Under the pieces are notes generated by a model that was not told where the DNA came from, did no database searches, and was given only the letters and a program-made list of their open reading frames with translations. A stretch of DNA of 64,000 nucleotides from NCBI GenBank assembly GCA_950097015.1, contig CATNEN010000011.1:4030001-4094000 (forward strand). The letters are read 5' to 3'. Made by a program: the position numbers and the translations under genes. This DNA is from Macrostomum hystrix. Its lineage: Eukaryota; Animalia; Platyhelminthes. Of this stretch, positions 42,333 to 51,912 are shown in pieces. Each line of letters begins with the position of its first letter. The stretch's first letter is position 1.

Positions 42333-43394
42333 ATGGCCAGGGCTATGCAAGAACAAGATTTGAAAGGCTTGGCTAACCGACTTTTGAAGTTCGACGCTAG
42401 TGACTTTTATAACCATGTGCCGCTGACTGCAACAGAATGTCTGATTGTGTGCCACATGGCCACGGAGGCTATGCGCAAAACAGAACTCTGCATCACTGTG
42501 AAGGCACCGATTAACATTGTTGGCGACCTGCACGGCCAGTTTCACGATCTGCTGCGCATCTTTGACTCGCTTGGCCAACCGCCGCAGTCCCGCTTTCTTT
42601 TCCTCGGTGACTACATCGACCGGGGCAAGTACTCGCTGGAGGTCATGACTCTGCTGTTTGTGCTCATGCTGCTCTACCCCGACTCGGTGTACCTGCTTCG
42701 CGGCAACCATGAGACTGCGAACATCTGCTGTCGCTACGGATTCAAGGACGAGCTTAAAATGCGCTTCGTCAAATCGCAGGCGCACGGAGTTCTCGGCGGC
42801 TTCGTCAGAACGTTCCAGTGGATGCCAATGTGCGCCATCGTCGACAGCCAAATTTTCTGCTGCCACGGTGGCATCTCGCCGAACTTCTTGCTGCAGCCTT
42901 TCAATAAAAGTCCCAGTCAGCAGGGCAATGTGAAAATCTTAAACGAATTCAAGAAGCCTATTGAACCATCTCCACCGGGTGTCCTGTGTGACATAATCTG
43001 GTCCGACCCGACGAGTACTAGCTTCAGTACTCAGTTCAACGCCACATCCGAAGTCGCCACGGAAGCCAAATGGCTGCCGAACAAGCGTGGCTGTTCGTTC
43101 CTGTTCACTGCACCTGCCCTCGAGGATGTGATGCGCGTGTTCCAGACTTATATGCTTGTCAGGGGCCACCAGGTTGCGCAAGGTGGCTACTTGACTCATC
43201 ACAATCGACGCTGCGTGACCGTGTTCAGCGCGCCAGGCTATTGCGGCATCGAAGATAATTCGGGCAGCGTCCTGCAAGTTGACCACAGGCAGGACAGCAA
43301 GACCCATCCCGGCAGCTTCTTCCTTCTTAGGCCTCTTGAACGAGACCCCGCGGCTATCAATTGCTTGTTTTGGTCGGAGCTAAGCGATGTTTAA
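42333..43394 (+). CDS. Divergent intronless PP1-like Ser/Thr phosphatase (PPP family), copy A, 353 aa
   Basis: GDLHGQ, GDYIDRG, LRGNHE, HGGISP, DIIWSDP, RGCSF, LVRGHQ, TVFSAPGYCG; the metal and catalytic residues are intact. Confidence 0.93.
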   Translation: MARAMQEQDLKGLANRLLKFDASDFYNHVPLTATECLIVCHMATEAMRKTELCITVKAPINIVGDLHGQFHDLLRIFDSLGQPPQSRFLFLGDYIDRGKYSLEVMTLLFVLMLLYPDSVYLLRGNHETANICCRYGFKDELKMRFVKSQAHGVLGGFVRTFQWMPMCAIVDSQIFCCHGGISPNFLLQPFNKSPSQQGNVKILNEFKKPIEPSPPGVLCDIIWSDPTSTSFSTQFNATSEVATEAKWLPNKRGCSFLFTAPALEDVMRVFQTYMLVRGHQVAQGGYLTHHNRRCVTVFSAPGYCGIEDNSGSVLQVDHRQDSKTHPGSFFLLRPLERDPAAINCLFWSELSDV

Positions 43395-43604: not shown

Positions 43605-44108
43605 CTACTAAATCCTCATTGACTCTCTCCTGAATCCTCATTGACTCTCTCCTGAATCATCATTGACTCTCTCCTGAATCATCATTGACTCTCTCCTGAA
43701 TCATCATTGACTCTCTCCTGAATCATCATTGACTCTCTCCTGAATCCTCATTAACTCTCTCCTGAATCATCATTGACTCTCTCCTGAATCCTCATTGACT
43801 CTCTCCCGAATCATCATTGACTCTCTCCTGAATCCTCATTAACTCTCTCCTGAATCATCATTGACTCTCTCCTGAATCCTCATTGACTCTCTCCTGAATC
43901 CTCATTGACTCTCTCCTGAATCATCATTGACTCTCTCCTGAATCATCATTGACTCTCTCCTGAATCCTCATTGACTCTCTCCTGAATCATCATTGACTCT
44001 CTCCTAAATCCTCATTGACTCTCTCCTGAATCCTCATTGACTCTCTCCTGAATCCTCATTGACTCTCTCCTGAATCATCATTGACTCTCTCCTGAATCCT
44101 CATTGACC
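43605..44108 (+). repeat. 22-bp minisatellite (TCATTGACTCTCTCCTGAATCA/C), ~22 copies
   Basis: Visible tandem units. Confidence 0.95.
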
Positions 44109-44930
44109 CTTATATTGATCCGATTCGGGCTTAAAATTGTAGCGATGCAAAAAAACGAATTCTACTCGAAGTGCAGATAACAGTAGCGATGCTAGACAAG
44201 ATTGTTCATGCGAATGAAGTCGTAGTAGCGACCTCTTCTGGCCTGCATCTCTGGCTTCAGCTTCTTCAGCACACTCAGAAGCAGTGGCCAGCTGCGGCAG
44301 CCAAATCTTTAAGTCAGCTCTGAGTTTGTTTCCCGACAGTTGGTTGAGTAGTTTTACAAAGTCCGTCCACTTTAATCTGAGTTCTCTAGTGAGTCTTGCA
44401 GTTTCCAAATCAAGCTGATCAGCAGGCATCAGCTTGACCTTCGATCTGATTGGCCTGCTGTTGTACGCGAGCAGCTCCGCCTGAATCTGCATCAACTCAA
44501 ACGGCGAGGCCATGTCGATGAAGTTGTCGATAAAACTGATGGTCTTACTGGTCCCTTCAATCAGAAGTCGAGCTCATATGCAATTATTGTAGAAATCGCT
44601 CGCAGCCTGAAACAATTAGTCACTCAGCTCGGCACTGGCGGAAATATTTTGCTGATCGTGAAGCAGCTCAAACAGCTTTCCTCTCAGATTCTCCGAGTCG
44701 ATGCCAATACGACCGATCACTGACTGAATCCTGGGTTTCGTTCGTAAATGGGTGGCTTTTCTGGAAGTTCGCAGGCGAACTGGTAGCAATCTTGGCACGG
44801 GTTGACTGACTGGTCAACGCTGGTTTGTAGAAGCGCGCTGGCACTTACACAAGCTTGGCTGAAGCACTGCTTCGGTGGCGGCTGCGGCTGCTCCTGCTCT
44901 GGCAGCTGCGACAGCGTTCTTGCATAAATC
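44100..44930 (-). pseudogene. Coding-like segment of unknown family with two in-frame stops and a probable small intron
   Basis: ORFs 44616-44798 and 44100-44513 share a frame and are separated by TAA and TGA (..AELSD*LFQAASDFYNNCI*ARLLIEG..). GTAAGT..CTACCAG intron-like piece at ~44790-44858. Composition is exon-like. Confidence 0.4.
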
Positions 44931-47900
44931 CCGAATTAGAATTAGACGTACCGTCCACTGCTATGAATCCCGAAGATATCAAAAGTGAGAAACACAGCTA
45001 AGGATACAATGCATCAACCATACCGTTGTTGCTTGCTCCTTAATTGCTGCTTCAGTTAACATGCATGGCTTTGTTCAGAGGGGATTTAACACGATGTAAA
45101 TCAAACTAGACACTCTGTAAAACACGTTAAGAAATATGTAATTTCTATAATTTCCGAATTTAAATTTTGTTTGTTTGCTTTAAAAGAGCCAGCAATTTAG
45201 ACACAGTTAAAATGCTTTTATTTATCCAGTCCTGGGTTAATATCGCTTTGAAGATTTGAATTGCACACTCGTGTAAGCATATATTGTCATTAGCTCGTAC
45301 CAGTATGCCGTAGCATGGATGCCGAATAAACAAAACAGTGCTAGCTCATTTTACGCCTACGCTTTTTACAAAAGAGACGACGCGAAAAGCAAAATGCGAT
45401 CGAATGTTATAGCAGCGTGCAACAACAGACAAACAGACCATGCCTGCATCAACTATTAAAACTGCATTAATACTCGTATATCTGTTCCCTAAACACTTAA
45501 TCTATTTTTAATATGCTATCCGTAAACAGGCACTCAATCCATGGTTCCGCGTGAAGGTGTGCCAAATGTGCTGATTATTTTTTCAATCTCGTAGGTGTAA
45601 GTTTTTCAATATAAATGATTGCGAGCGTAATCCGCTCTTTATAGAGAGCGGCGCAAGACGCAGCTTTCACATTGCTCCAACCGACTGTCATTATCTAACA
45701 GGGTTCAGCGGGATTTTAATCATTAACACGTGCAGCAACGTGTCACAATCGACGTTTACCATGCAATCATGCTTGTTCCGCATCCTTACTTTAGTGCGAC
45801 TAAAACTTTTAAGAAGTTAAGAATTTTCCAGGATTTAATTCCTGTGTTTGAGAAATTCCGACCAGGGACTGTTAATAAATACTCAGGGAGTCCCTGATTC
45901 CGAACTTACAATTAGCAACAAATACAAAGAGAAGTAAACAAACAGGATTGAAAAGGATAATCGAGCTCCATGAGATACGAGAGAGAGAGAACACAGGAAA
46001 ATGATTAGCCACAGAAAAAACGATCGATGCTTAGAACAGTTATAAAACTTTCTACCTTAAAAAATAAAAAATACTTTACCGGTGTTTTTACAACAAAACA
46101 AGTTGTTTTTTTCTAATGCAAACAAATCTTTAAATTCTTAAGTAGAGCTTGTTCTAGTAGAAGCAAAAAAACTTTATGTTATTATTAAAAGCATATAATA
46201 AATACTAACTATCCACTACTAGCTAACAGCCATTCTTTCTGACCAAAGTGAAAACTATTTTTCAACTTACATTCTTCGTCTTTGCTTTTTTATCCCCGCT
46301 AGACACTGCTACTTCACTATTAATAGTTTTTTATCAGATTAATTACCATAATTTGGCAAATTATGTCTAACTTTCCTAGCTATTACTTGCGCCTAAAAGT
46401 CTTTGAAATTCCTTTAAAAATATTTCTTTAATTATTTGATACAGTTTGTTAGATCGACATATCAATCTTTTGCTATCCGCCTATCGTCATAATCTATAAT
46501 ACAATTCAAGAATTGGGTTAAAAGAGTGCTTGCCTGCGCCAAAATATCGGCCCCGATTTCGCCATACTATTCAGCAGTGCAATTCAGCTTTTATAGAACC
46601 TGTGTTAGACCCTATGCTGGCTAAACTAATTGCTGTTTATGGCATTTGTTGTTATGGTAAATAAAGGTAAGTGTTTCTTCGCATGTACTTTTTGAAATCA
46701 TTATAGTTACATGTTTTTCGTCATGTTTTACTAGGGATTATTTGTCTGGAATCTAGACTACGCCTAGATTATTAGGACTGAGGCGAAAAGCTACATTTTT
46801 ACCCATTAAGACTTAAGCCTATTTAGTACAGGTCTTGCAAGATTAAATATTATTGTCTACAATGCAATATAGTGTTTTTGCCAGTTCAAGAGCTCTATTT
46901 TACTAATCTCTGGGCTCTAGCCTCAGCCTCTAGCTAGCTTTTGCTTTAAATAGCTAGCTTTTGGCACTTTTGCTTTAGATAGCTAGCTTCAGCCTTGTCT
47001 ATAATGGGTATAAATATCCATAAAATGCTTTCCCTATTTTGAGTCTTTTTCATGATCCATAGTTCGGATCAATGTAGTTTCTGGCATACATTTGTGCAGT
47101 TGGTATATATCGGTGTGCACTTGGCATGCACAAGCTTCCAATTGGCATATTCCGCATGCAAAAAGGTGCTTCGTATTTATGTTTGTGTCATGTCCATGTC
47201 CACGTGCAGTAGCAAATAAGAGAATGTCAGTGGCAAAAATATATGACTAAGGCGGAAGGCCTTTAGTTTACAAAGTTGGAGTGGCAGCGAAGTTAATGTG
47301 CTGCATGGCACCTATATTTATATTTACAGCAAACGCAAGAGCGAGATAGAGGGGCCTAGGGAGGTGCGAAATGGTGGCTTGACTTCTCACACCCGACTTA
47401 GCGAGCCGGCTGGCAGGGTGCACCAACCCCCACCTCAACTAGACTGAGGTTGAGGGGTTTGGGTGCGGCTGCACTGTTGCTGGCCGGTCACGTGTTGACT
47501 GTCCGCCACAGGACAATAAATTGAAATAAGAAAAATGGTTGGCTAAAGTCTATCTAAGCTGCTCTAAGCGCTAAAGCTGAAATTTCCTATTTTTATCTAA
47601 GTGATTCAAAACTTTCCAAAATTGTGCAGCTTCAAACAAACTCCAAACAAACATTTAAACAAAGTTCAGCATTTTTTAAAAAAATATTTCTTAATGAGCT
47701 TCTAAGAGCCCAATTGTCTCAAAAAATATTGGACAGTAGTTTCATTTTAATATAATATATATTGCTTTGAACAAAAGCAAATTTTGAACTAAAAAAATAG
47801 TGCTTTTGGTTTTGCCTGCTAATACTAATACTAATAATAAATTTAAGTGATTTAGGTGTTATATGGCCCTTTTTATTTTTATTAATATAAAAACTCACTC

Positions 47901-48857
47901 TTTGACTCACTGAATTAACTTAAGAAATAAAAATTCTTCTTTTACTTTGTCTAATGACTTCTCTTTCAATAACTTATTTTCTTATTGATTGGCCTTTCTC
48001 TCTATTCCCTGTGTCTCCTTACTCTCAATTTATAATAGTTTCCTAAATATATGCACACTAGACAGTTTTTTTCTGACAGCATTATCAAGTTTGCTATATT
48101 TTTTAGCCAACTACATTAGTTGGCTAACACAGTAGTTATAGGCCTTAATAATAAAATCCCCCATTGTTGCCATATTAACCCAATATTACACCCTCAAAAG
48201 TTGCCAATTCCACCAAAACTTGTAAGCTATCCCACCGGAAAGCTAATTTTTCAAGTTTACCATTTTAACAGACTTCCCATTAAGCTGTTGACTTTCCAAA
48301 GTAAGAAAATTTTCCTTATTATATGTTAGGATTTCATCTCAATTCAAAAGTTATTAGTGTGCATTGTCATACATGCGCAACACCTGGCCAACCTGGCCAA
48401 ACTGGCCAGGTGAAACGAGGGCCAAGCAAGGTAAGTCGCAAAAGCCAATCAACCAAGTGCAAAAAATCAAAGGGGGGACCAAGGGACAAAAAAGGAAGGC
48501 ATGAAGAAAAGGAAAAAGGGGAGAGAAAATGAGAGCAAACTAAGTCGTAAATAGAGCAAAAACTAAGTCGCACAGCTGGCTAAGATTTGGGAGGTTGCAC
48601 ATGTATGTGCATTGTTCTTATTATTGCAGAAAAGGCTTCAATTAGTGTTTTAAAACTTGCTTTGCTTTTTTCTATAGGTCTAAAGTTCACGGAACACTTC
48701 TTTTTTACCTCTATGCTTCCTTTACAGCTGTACCATAGCCTGGCCCATCATAAAATATTTTCACCATTAAATGTTTTATTAAGACAGGATAAGTGTTCAT
48801 AGTAAGGTTTTTCTTTTTGCTTACTAGCCACAGTAAAGTGCTCTATGTGTTGACTGT

Positions 48858-48930
48858 TTGTTATGATGAGAAAATGTTTGTCTGCAAATCAATTTGAAGA
48901 CATTCAATCACCAAGATCGCTGATAGAACA
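48858..48930 (+). ncRNA. SNORD24: Box C/D snoRNA, U24/SNORD24-like, copy 1
   Basis: C box ATGATGA 48863. D guide ATCACCAAGATCG-CTGA (48920-48923) is nearly identical to the vertebrate U24 3' end (ACCACCAAGATCGCTGA) and antisense to the LSU rRNA motif GAUCUUGGUGGU. Terminal TGTT/AACA stem; lies in intron 48802-49004. Confidence 0.85.
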
Positions 48931-49084
48931 GATCTATAATATCTGTTAATGTTTATTTTTTTCTATTCCTCAGTGTTATAATATCAACTTTATTCCCTTT
49001 TTAGATTCCATGTAAAACCTCTGCTTCCTAACAGGTCTATAATGTGTAAGCTTTCTTTTTTTCACGGTTATACTTAATACTGTA

Positions 49085-49162
49085 ACAAATGATGTAAAAT
49101 ACTAACTATCTGGAGTCCAGTAGGCCAATGAGGACTTTTTATCACCAAGATCGCTGAGAGAA
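49085..49162 (+). ncRNA. SNORD24: Box C/D snoRNA, U24-like, copy 2
   Basis: ATGATGTAAAATACTAACTATCTGG resembles the U24 5' half (ATGATGTAAAAGAATATTTGCTATCTGA). Same D guide plus CTGA at 49154-49157; lies in intron 49046-49240. Confidence 0.85.
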
Positions 49163-49346
49163 ATTAGACAAGAAAAGTACTTGTTATTATTATTTTGCAT
49201 GAATACTTAATGCACAAAACTCCTAAATAAATAATTTTAGAGCCAGGAAACAACATTAATATACGTGGCTAACAAATGTTGTGATGGCAGTTATAGCAGG
49301 TAACAAAGCTTATGAAATAATTACCCCCGAGTGTACCCCAATAGTG

Positions 49347-49427
49347 TGAACATGATGAAATCCATCTTTGTCCAGAGTCATTCAATGACATTGAGGACCC
49401 TTTATCACCAAGATCGCTGAAGTGTTC
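49347..49427 (+). ncRNA. SNORD24: Box C/D snoRNA, U24-like, copy 3
   Basis: GAAC-ATGATGA (49352) to ATCACCAAGATCG-CTGA (49417-49420), then GTGTTC terminal stem; lies in intron 49300-49501. Confidence 0.85.
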
Positions 49428-49609
49428 TTTGTCATAAATGAAGTGTTAATTCAAGCTCTGTAAATTTCTCATTCCTATATGAGATTGCCTTTGTTTTTCA
49501 GATTCTCAGATTTGAAGTCCTCAAAAAATTAAAGGTAAACTCGTCACCATTTTCATGTGTTTTAGCTTTAATCATATAAATAATTTGTTTCGTATAACTC
49601 TTCAAATTC

Positions 49610-49680
49610 CTCAATGATGCTTTAACAGAGTTTCTTCACCTGATCTGCGAGAGACATTTCGTATTTCTTTTTTGAAAAGT
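49610..49680 (+). ncRNA. SNORD36: Box C/D snoRNA, U36/SNORD36C (snR47)-like
   Basis: AATGATGCTTTAACAGAGTTTCTTCACCTGA resembles human U36C AATGATGGTTAAGAATTTCTTCACCTGA. The guide is antisense to the LSU motif GUGAAGAAAUUC. The D box is only a degenerate TTGA (49672). Confidence 0.6.
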
Positions 49681-50853
49681 CTAGTAGCAGACTGTGAATG
49701 ATAAGCGACAGTCTGATTGTTCATTCTTGATACCTCCTAAGTCATGTTTCAGTTTGAAGACAGTTTATTAAAATAAGTTATTTTTTCACCCAATTTTCAG
49801 AGCCCACCTGGTGTTCACTAAACCTGATGTCATGACCAACACGATGTGCCTAATTAAAATCTGACTGAAAGACAAGCAGATTTTTATATTAAATGTAAAT
49901 AGTTTTGTTGCATTTGCTTCTCTTCTACACGATCATATAAATTATTCCCTGAAATTTATTTTTTTTCTTGCAAATATATATTCTTGTGGCAGCTAAGCAT
50001 TTACAAGCTCAGCTACTTTTTTTTCTTATATTGAATTTGCAGTTTTTTCTGCAAGTAAGTATTTTCGTGGTTTCTATTTCTTTTATTTTAATGATCTTTA
50101 GCAGCAATAAACACAGCTAAAACATCTCTAGTACGACTGGATTCGTTTTAAAAAGTTAAGGGTCGATTTCAAGCGAAATTTGCTTTAATGATACTCAATT
50201 CATCCAGGAAAACAGTCATTCAGGCAATCATGACATTGCCTGAATATGATTTAGTCAGTTTGAGCGTACATAAATGCCCTGCATTTAAGTCTATATTAAT
50301 TAATCTATCTATTCATTAATCTAATTAATTAATTAAGCAATCTATAGTAATTACTGCTCCCACAAACGAAGTGGCCAAAACAGAGAGGATAAGTTATGGA
50401 AGCGCATGCATCTCTAGGCTAACATCACACCCGTCGTTTCTCGACAAAAAGTCACAACCGTGGCGCCAGCATCGGCCTTAAAGTATTGTTTCCACTAATC
50501 AGAGAGCTCTGCGTTCTAATTTGGTCTATGGACTGCAGAAACACGATTGCCGCACACAAAACTTGTAAGGAGCCACGCTGAATATTTAGGCCTCTGCTGG
50601 ACTCTATTTCTCATTCTTTTCCAATTGACAAGAACTCTTGGCGCTTCATCCCAGAAAATGTAGACAAGTTTTTATTTAAAAACTGTAGTCGCCTTCCATT
50701 GCGTTAATTATTTAAATAGCGAAAAAAATTGCCGTTTTGCAGTGCAAAGGGTTGCTAATGCCAGATAAGAGAAAAAATAGAGGGACAGCTCATAGTGAAC
50801 CCGTTCGCTTGTAATTGTAACTCAATGCATTTATATAAAGCGACCCTATAAAG

Positions 50854-51912
50854 TCACTCCTCACGCATTTCGTGCCAGAACAAATTATTCATCGCCGCCT
50901 CGTCTCTTTGCAACGGTTTAAGAAGAAAGAAACTACCGGGTATCTTTTCGTTATCCAAATGGTCAATCTGCAGCACGCTGCTAGTGTTGTTGTACATACC
51001 GCAGTAGCCTGGCGCGCTGAACACTGTTAGACAGCGTCGGTTCAGCTGCGAGTTGTAGCCGTTCATAGCCAGTTGATGGCCTCTGACAAGCATCTGGGTC
51101 TCGAACATGCTCATCACGTCATCCAGGGCGCCACTTGAGAAAGCGAAGGAGCAGCCACGATTGTTCGGCAGCCACCTGGCCTCTGTTAGGGTTTCGCTGC
51201 TCGGGTTGAACTGAGCATTTCGGACATAGCTAACCGGATCGGCCCACATTAGGTCGCACAGGATTCCGGGCCCTATCGGTTCCTTTGGCTGTTTGAGTTC
51301 GTTTAGGATAAGCACATTGGCCTGCTGGCCAGCTTTCGGATTGAATGGCTGCAGCAAGAAGTTCGGCGAGATACCACCGTGGCAGCAGAAGATTTGGTTG
51401 TCGAGGATGGCGCACATCGGCATCCACTGGAACGTCCTGACGAAGCCGCCGAGAACCTTGTGGGCTTGCGCCCGAAGCATTCTCTGAGCTATCTCATCCT
51501 TGAATCCGTAGCGACAGCAGATGTTCGCAGTCTCATGGTTGCCGCGAAGCAGGTACACCGAGTCGGGGTAGAGCAGCATGAGCACAAACAGCAGAGTCAT
51601 GACCTCCAGCGAGTACTTGCCCCGGTCGATGTAGTCACCGAGGAAAAGAAAGCGGGACTGCGGCGGTTGGCCAAGCGAGTCAAAGATGCGCAGCAGATCG
51701 TGAAACTGGCCGTGCAGGTCGCCAACAATGTTAATCGGTGTCTTCACAGTGATGCAGAGTTCTGTTTTGCGCATAGCCTCCGTGGCCATGTGGCACACCG
51801 TCAGGCACTCCATCGCCGTCAGCGGCACATGGTTGTGAGAATCTTCGATGTCGAACGCCAGCAGACGATTGGCCAAAGCTTCCAAATCGATACTCTGAAA
51901 CAACTGCAGCAT
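50854..51912 (-). CDS. Divergent intronless PP1-like phosphatase, copy B, 352 aa
   Basis: Same PPP motifs (GDLHG, GDYIDRG, RGNHE, HGG, DLMWADP, RGHQ, SAPGYCG); clear paralog of 42333-43394. Confidence 0.93.
   Translation of the reverse strand: MLQLFQSIDLEALANRLLAFDIEDSHNHVPLTAMECLTVCHMATEAMRKTELCITVKTPINIVGDLHGQFHDLLRIFDSLGQPPQSRFLFLGDYIDRGKYSLEVMTLLFVLMLLYPDSVYLLRGNHETANICCRYGFKDEIAQRMLRAQAHKVLGGFVRTFQWMPMCAILDNQIFCCHGGISPNFLLQPFNPKAGQQANVLILNELKQPKEPIGPGILCDLMWADPVSYVRNAQFNPSSETLTEARWLPNNRGCSFAFSSGALDDVMSMFETQMLVRGHQLAMNGYNSQLNRRCLTVFSAPGYCGMYNNTSSVLQIDHLDNEKIPGSFFLLKPLQRDEAAMNNLFWHEMREE

Follow-up and report, generated by a model that had tools for sequence, protein, structure and literature searches.

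The subject of this report is a window of 64,000 nucleotides (nt) from the flatworm Macrostomum hystrix (GenBank assembly GCA_950097015.1, contig CATNEN010000011.1, positions 4,030,001 to 4,094,000 of the forward strand); positions are those of this window unless another contig is named. We conclude, with a probability of about 0.7, that it contains an ordinary non-coding host gene for small nucleolar RNAs (snoRNAs) with four introns that hold one box C/D snoRNA each, three being of the U24/snR24 type and the fourth a candidate of the U36C/snR47 type. The direct observations are the anatomy of the sequences, the pairing of the guides with the large-subunit (LSU) ribosomal RNA (rRNA) of the same genome, GT..AG splice joints, and the absence of an open reading frame (ORF). 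In the mechanism we propose, an independent RNA polymerase II gene on the plus strand, from ~46.4 to 49.97 kb, would give rise to five short exons spliced to an RNA of ~0.6 kb lacking a usable reading frame, and the introns would be the functional products. Each intron would free one box C/D snoRNA through splicing, debranching and exonucleolytic trimming, while the spliced host RNA would presumably decay. The three paralogous U24/snR24-type D guides would direct fibrillarin to 2'-O-methylate C1699 of LSU rRNA (GAUCmUUGG), and the U36C/snR47-type D' guide would direct methylation of LSU A2543.

The U24-type snoRNAs share a 17-mer, ATCACCAAGATCGCTGA, of which three perfect copies are found on the plus strand, at 48907, 49141 and 49404 (0 expected by chance); an earlier, sequence-only reading of this DNA had noted the three occurrences. 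A search of the 220-Mb genome detected no exact 17-mer outside the locus, and the three matches with one mismatch found elsewhere in the genome all lack an upstream C box. In each copy the 17-mer terminates in CUGA and lies 44-52 nt 3' of an AUGAUGA or AUGAUGU C box, the C boxes starting at 48863, 49089 and 49352 in copies 1 to 3. The D box ends 60-68 nt past the C-box start, in rough agreement with the earlier statement that the 17-mer follows a C box by ~60-70 nt. A UGA(A/G)GAC C' box immediately 5' of the guide is conserved in all copies. The parts of the three snoRNAs are as follows.

48854-48931, plus strand: U24-type box C/D snoRNA copy 1 (SNORD24 35.1 bits, E 0.0011, model match 48857-48927)
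48863-48869, 48895-48901 and 48920-48923, plus strand: C box, C' box (UGAAGAC) and D box of copy 1
48854-48860 with 48924-48931, plus strand: terminal stem of copy 1, closed in the computed fold
49083-49161, plus strand: U24-type box C/D snoRNA copy 2 (SNORD24 36.5 bits, E 0.00052)
49089-49095 and 49154-49157, plus strand: C box and D box of copy 2, with C' box UGAGGAC
49348-49427, plus strand: U24-type box C/D snoRNA copy 3 (SNORD24 partial match, 23.3 bits, 49382-49420)
49352-49358 and 49417-49420, plus strand: C box and D box of copy 3, with C' box UGAGGAC

The gathering cut-off of the Rfam family SNORD24 (RF00069) is 41 bits, and matches below it were read in E-value mode. In that mode copies 1 and 2 matched SNORD24 better than any other Rfam family, and they are also the top two SNORD24 matches genome-wide. 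Minimum-free-energy folding of the snoRNAs gave no useful information, which is common for box C/D RNAs.

To identify targets, the genome's own rDNA was retrieved and the guides were paired against its small-subunit (SSU), 5.8S and LSU rRNAs. The D guide forms a duplex of 12-14 bp with LSU 1696-1709 (12 bp in copy 1, 14 bp each in copies 2 and 3), and in all three copies position 5 upstream of the D box lies opposite C1699 in GAUCUUGG, the C of the snR24/U24 site to which the sequence-only reading had assigned it. Each copy therefore carries a D guide of at least 12 nt on LSU GAUCUUGGUGG with the C at position 5, and the pairing register is that of the SNORD24 family consensus. According to Hoeppner and Poole (PMC3511168), the site of the SNORD24 D guide is Cm2338 in human and Cm1435 in yeast; the earlier reading gave Cm1437 for yeast, which refers to the same site. 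These results support the assignment of the three copies to the U24/snR24 type.

One could envisage that the U24-like copies arose by recent, redundant tandem duplication and that a single one still works, the others being pseudogenes in decay. The D' boxes are indeed degenerate (CUGC, CUGG, CAGA), the D' guides have diverged, and copy 2 has a poor terminal stem. However, all three copies possess an intact 17-mer and intact C, C' and D boxes despite near-random identity of the flanks, and each copy keeps a spacing of 81-83 nt to its own 3' splice site. The 17-mer guide and D box are invariant while the remaining snoRNA sequence and the intron flanks are at near-random identity, which is the pattern expected under selection on the boxes and guide. 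We therefore regard decay of two of the copies as improbable, and take all three to be probable functional members of the host gene's snoRNA set.

The fourth element lies in the intron that follows copy 3 and is the putative U36C-type snoRNA.

49612-49719, plus strand: U36C-type box C/D snoRNA candidate, ~108 nt
49614-49620, 49628-49639 and 49640-49643, plus strand: its C box (AUGAUGC), D' guide and D' box
49695-49701 and 49713-49716, plus strand: its C' box (UGAAUGA) and D box, with a 3-bp terminal stem

After the C box it reads GAGUUUCUUCAC followed by CUGA, where the SNORD36 consensus (taken from the alignment of the genome's best SNORD36 match) has GAAUUUCUUcac followed by CUGA, so that the D' guide and D' box are identical to the Rfam consensus at 15 of 16 positions. 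The D' guide forms 12 bp, one of them G-U, with LSU 2539-2550, and A2543 is at position 5; in terms of the target motif, the guide lies on LSU GUGAAGAAAUUC with the second A of GUGAA at that position. A2543 corresponds to the U36/snR47 site, which in human is Am3703 (PMC3511168, PMC2653536). In vertebrate U36 the 28S (Am3703) function resides in the 5' guide, and in human it is carried by U36C alone (PMC2653536). The consensus match and the A2543 pairing bear out the earlier notice of a U36C-like guide in this intron. A D guide to SSU GUUAAAAAGCUC, which would confer the U36A/B function, was not found in the fourth RNA, and human U36C likewise lacks the SSU-guide function (PMC2653536). The C-box-plus-guide pattern of the fourth RNA is unique genome-wide, and a reversed control pattern gave one genomic match.

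The position of the four elements within their introns is nearly constant. The D boxes of copies 1 to 3 and the fourth RNA end 81, 83, 81 and 84 nt, respectively, before the last intron base, and the spacing is thus the same in the 2.3-kb intron that holds copy 1 as in the one with the fourth RNA. As cited in PMC5519232, Hirose and Steitz found that box C/D snoRNAs in human introns favour a site that precedes the branch point by ~50 nt, to which a distance of 81-84 nt from the 3' splice site corresponds. We regard the constant spacing as the best internal evidence that all four snoRNAs are processed from introns.

The structure of the host transcript was derived from transcript contigs of four small public runs that cover the region; the runs are not recorded as RNA and were taken as transcriptomes on the basis of GT..AG joints. 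The joints 49046-49240, 49300-49501 and 49535-49800 were present in contigs of all four runs, in answer to the junction check that the sequence-only reading had called for, and they enclose copy 2, copy 3 and the fourth RNA. Contigs entering exon 2 at 49003/49005 extend upstream by 255 letters in all four runs, and the 30 letters shown joined to exon 2 are those of window positions 46635-46664 followed by AG, again in four of four. A perfect donor, AAG|GTAAGT, is present as the 5' splice site at 46667. The match to 46635-46664 together with this donor indicates that the first intron is 46667-49004, with copy 1 near its 3' end. Three of the joints are therefore direct, and the fourth, between exons 1 and 2, is reached through a loose contig end. 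Exon 1 and exon 5 each occur once in the genome, so that the joined form cannot stem from a retrocopy. The extent of the transcript contigs suggests that exon 1 starts at or before ~46387, assuming colinearity with the genome. The resulting gene, which extends over at least ~46.4-49.97 kb on the plus strand, has the following parts.

46387-46666, plus strand: exon 1; the last 30 nt (46637-46666) are verified, and the 5' end is the putative one
46667-49004, plus strand: intron A, 2338 nt, GT..AG, containing a dispersed repeat and U24-type copy 1
49005-49045, plus strand: exon 2, 41 nt
49046-49240, plus strand: intron B, 195 nt, GT..AG, holding U24-type copy 2
49241-49299, plus strand: exon 3, 59 nt
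49300-49501, plus strand: intron C, 202 nt, GT..AG, holding U24-type copy 3
49502-49534, plus strand: exon 4, 33 nt
49535-49800, plus strand: intron D, 266 nt, GT..AG, holding the U36C-type candidate
49801-49971, plus strand: exon 5, the last; contigs end between 49934 and 49989
48368-48607, no strand assigned: interspersed 240-bp repeat, resembling a short interspersed element or a miniature inverted-repeat transposable element (SINE/MITE-like), with ~990 or more candidate genomic copies at 88-93% identity

Exon 5 contains ATTAAA at 49853 and 49888. A tract of C plus pyrimidines at 46371-46377, which shortly precedes the putative contig start, may be a 5' terminal oligopyrimidine (5' TOP) start or, just as well, a splice acceptor. 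Neither Rfam at E up to 1 nor a scan for C/D boxes plus guide detected a further snoRNA on the plus strand of intron A or exon 1.

The 5' part of this model replaces that of the sequence-only reading, which had placed exons at 48330-48800. Those exons (48330-48430 and ~48679-48802) were rejected, as no splice joint in the contigs of the four runs supports an exon within 48330-48802, and 48368-48607 is the dispersed repeat, whose contig depth is very high and whose flanks are many and different; exon 2 is instead joined to the exon ending at 46666. The region 48006-49032 is covered only by low-depth unspliced contigs. The claim that each U24-like copy sits in a GT-AG intron of its own stands for copies 2 and 3; copy 1 is also intronic, but in an intron of 2.3 kb rather than a small one. 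The repeat includes a consensus-like 5' splice site, CAAG|GTAAGT, at 48431, which is apparently used by one contig.

We examined the coding capacity of the spliced transcript. From the verified part of exon 1 onward, stops occur in the three frames at 46658, 46662 and 49013, the last open frame being closed in exon 2 by TAA 49013-49015. No frame stays open beyond 49015; whatever the sequence further upstream, exons 2-5 are not translated, and any stop codon would precede introns B-D. The spliced model, with a colinear exon 1, is 584 nt long and its longest ORF from an ATG is 16 aa, which is shorter than in 96% of shuffled sequences (mean 36). The Pfam search, which covered the open stretches within single exons, gave no match, and no coding similarity to RPL7A was detected in 45000-50500 (all E above 1). 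These results agree with the earlier statement that the exons hold no RPL7A or other ORF, and they support the conclusion that the transcript lacks coding capacity in the exons seen, exon 1 being verified for 30 nt.

The alternative is a protein-coding gene with upstream exons beyond 46637, an ORF ending at or before 49015, and the snoRNA introns in its 3' untranslated region, in which case the mRNA would be a target of nonsense-mediated decay. Since verification of exon 1 is confined to its last 30 nt, and a 54-codon open stretch, albeit one without a good ATG, ends at TAA 46662-46664, such a gene can be envisaged. Yet there is no plus-strand ORF of at least 70 aa in 43.4-46.4 kb, and a minus-strand ORF (44100-44513) lies between; the open stretches have no Pfam match, the exon-1 ORF from an ATG has just 16 aa, and 46.0-46.4 kb is AT-rich and looks intergenic. 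No plus-strand coding exons were found upstream of the gene, where the minus-strand ORF and the AT-rich spacer are located. We consider a protein-coding host very unlikely, and a non-coding host gene accounts for the exons seen.

Several points weigh against a non-coding host of four snoRNAs. Rfam at its gathering threshold gave no match in the whole window, and the SNORD24 scores of all three copies (36.5, 35.1 and 23.3 bits) are under the 41-bit cut-off. The D' guides of the U24-type copies formed only weak, G-U-rich duplexes with the genome's SSU, 5.8S and LSU rRNAs. Of the CTGA sites elsewhere in the window, 6-10% equal the guides in duplex score against rRNA; we therefore rejected this score as stand-alone evidence. 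On the plus strand of 46000-50100, the only four CTGA sites that pass it are the four guides described. As a duplex of this kind is in itself not unusual, the case rests on the target nucleotide, the identity to the family guide in register, the boxes and the intron position. With regard to the transcript, the RNA nature of the four runs is deduced from their splice joints, exon 1 is verified over no more than 30 nt, and release and accumulation of the snoRNAs are predicted.

The remaining points concern the fourth RNA. No SNORD36 (RF00049) match to it was obtained at E up to 10 in 48200-50200, and the Rfam scan proposed in the sequence-only reading gave matches below the cut-off for SNORD24 and none at the locus for SNORD36. 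Its C box is imperfect (AUGAUGC), a spacer of 51 nt separates D' from C', no rRNA target found for its 11-nt D guide is convincing, and the terminal stem has only 3 bp. The computed fold includes a possible hairpin overlapping the D box, and no transcript contig of the four runs covers the intron. These features, together with the single genomic match of the reversed control pattern, are those to be expected if the fourth element matched the U36 guide by chance or as a decayed relic, with the host carrying three U24-type snoRNAs only. In contrast, the 15/16 match of guide and D' box is in the correct register, and the D box is as far from the 3' splice site as in the U24-type copies. Furthermore, the fourth RNA is the only candidate found for its methylation site, the SNORD36-like RNA in an RPS12 intron (described below) having a degenerate 28S guide, and the A2543-equivalent site has been traced to the last eukaryotic common ancestor (PMC3511168). 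On balance we hold a non-functional fourth element to be unlikely, and retain it as the putative U36C-type member of the host gene.

The members of the SNORD24 family carry a second guide, in the D' position. No D' region of copies 1-3 pairs with the genome's LSU 1705-1720 (the UAGCAA site), where the LSU reads GCAAUUACUC and the family D' guide implies GCAAAUAU. The next SNORD24 matches in the genome, after those at the locus, are two tandem box C/D snoRNAs on contig C14 (L004 1321-1398 and 1501-1579). Their D' guide, UAAUUGCUACU, forms a perfect 11-bp duplex with LSU 1708-1718 and targets A1711 or G1712, which we take to correspond to the yeast A1449/G1450 site assigned to snR24. The two retain the ACCACC start of the U24 D guide, although the D guides of the pair differ by divergence. 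A PNKP-like ORF with FHA and HAD-phosphatase features ends just upstream of the two snoRNAs, which are apparently located in an intron of this gene. The LSU itself reads GUAGUAGCAAUUACUCAAG at 1705-1722, compared with the GCAAAUAU implied by the SNORD24 consensus guide. The change in this conserved LSU helix is lineage-specific and matched by a compensating guide change in the C14 snoRNAs.

The genome's best SNORD36 match, and the only one above cut-off (33.3 bits), is on contig C9 at 921121-921185 (L026 1501-1565), in an RPS12 intron ~210 nt upstream of an RPS12 exon. This AT-rich RNA has retained the 18S-type guide, in which one position is mismatched, whereas the 28S guide has degenerated. 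Both ancestral two-guide snoRNAs thus appear to have been split into single-guide descendants in this genome. A parallel is found in human, where guides are split between U24 and U76 and between U36A and U36C (PMC3511168, PMC2653536).

Four putative rRNA-methylation guides and their host can therefore be annotated in DNA that gene finders had left empty, with Cm1699 and Am2543 on LSU rRNA as the predictions. Together with the snoRNAs on the two other contigs, they would constitute a clear example of the ancestral U24 and U36 guides being split between genes, and in one of the split cases the guide changed along with a lineage-specific change of its rRNA target. The sharing of a host by U24 and U36C, known from vertebrate RPL7A, merits comparison in other flatworms and spiralians.

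Other features were observed around the locus and in the genome. The host gene is flanked by inverted, intronless paralogues of a PP1-type phosphatase, at 42333-43394 (plus strand) and 50854-51912 (minus strand). A 54-nt piece of exon 1 (46495-46548), which has a TATA-like motif at its start, recurs with ~90% identity at two loci, on contigs C38 and C33, near which no C/D snoRNA candidates were found. A full-length U1 small nuclear RNA gene (151.7 bits; L019 9713-9875) is located inside the 11.6-kb rDNA repeat on contig C15, on the same strand as the rRNAs and ~2.7 kb upstream of SSU.

The relation to RPL7A was examined in the genome itself. Two inverted RPL7A copies are present ~60 kb apart on contig C25, at 3826964-3827134 (plus strand) and 3886847-3887017 (minus strand) (L018); each has a long first coding exon with ~190 codons, which a GC-rich intron of ~420 nt in the coding sequence separates from the last exon. 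Rfam at E up to 1 detected no snoRNA in the scanned RPL7A locus, and neither the exact 17-mer nor the C-box-plus-U36C-guide pattern occurs in the genome outside the host locus, RPL7A included. The inspection of rpl7a and its introns suggested by the sequence-only reading accordingly located the gene on C25, where it carries no U24 or U36 guides and, in the locus scanned, no Rfam snoRNA. Vertebrate RPL7A, the host of U24 and U36A/B/C, resembles the flatworm gene in that both families share one host with each snoRNA in an intron of its own (PMC2653536); unlike RPL7A, the flatworm host is non-coding and shows no residual RPL7A similarity. It could be argued that U24-U36C co-hosting is an ancestral animal linkage, in which, in this flatworm lineage, the RPL7A intron block persisted in a transcript whose coding exons disappeared or had never existed, RPL7A lost those introns, and the two-guide U24 and U36 were split into single-guide descendants at four loci. 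We think this history distinctly unlikely. In sponges U24 is found in RPL5 (PMC3412847), and changes of host are known for snoRNAs (PMC3511168). That the two families sharing vertebrate RPL7A should also share a host here is suggestive, but does not by itself amount to evidence of descent.

Compared with SNORD24/snR24 (RF00069), the U24-type copies have the same box C/D build, the same C' box UGAxGAC, and a D guide xxCACCAAGAUCG followed by CUGA in the family register on the C of GAUCUUGG (PMC3511168). They differ in their scores below the cut-off and in the loss of the family D' guide at the locus, its function apparently residing in the two C14 snoRNAs; the host also differs from the known SNORD24 hosts, being neither RPL7A as in vertebrates nor RPL5 as in sponges (PMC3412847). 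The fourth RNA shares with human SNORD36C and yeast snR47 (RF00049, clan CL00051) the D' guide GAxUUUCUUCAC followed by CUGA on the A of GUGAAGAAAUUC and, as in human U36C, only the 28S guide is carried. It departs from the SNORD36 model in having no covariance match, a length of ~108 nt against 77 positions, a long D'-C' spacer and an orphan D guide. As to the gene itself, non-coding snoRNA hosts include mammalian UHG/SNHG1 and GAS5 and the dUhg genes of Drosophila. The flatworm gene has in common with these its short, spliced exons devoid of ORFs, one snoRNA per intron, the conservation of snoRNA elements but not of exons, and the fixed distance to the 3' splice site; it differs in being small, with four snoRNAs, three of which are paralogues of one guide. 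The gene type is thus well known, and the only unusual feature is the pairing of the same two guide families as in vertebrate RPL7A.

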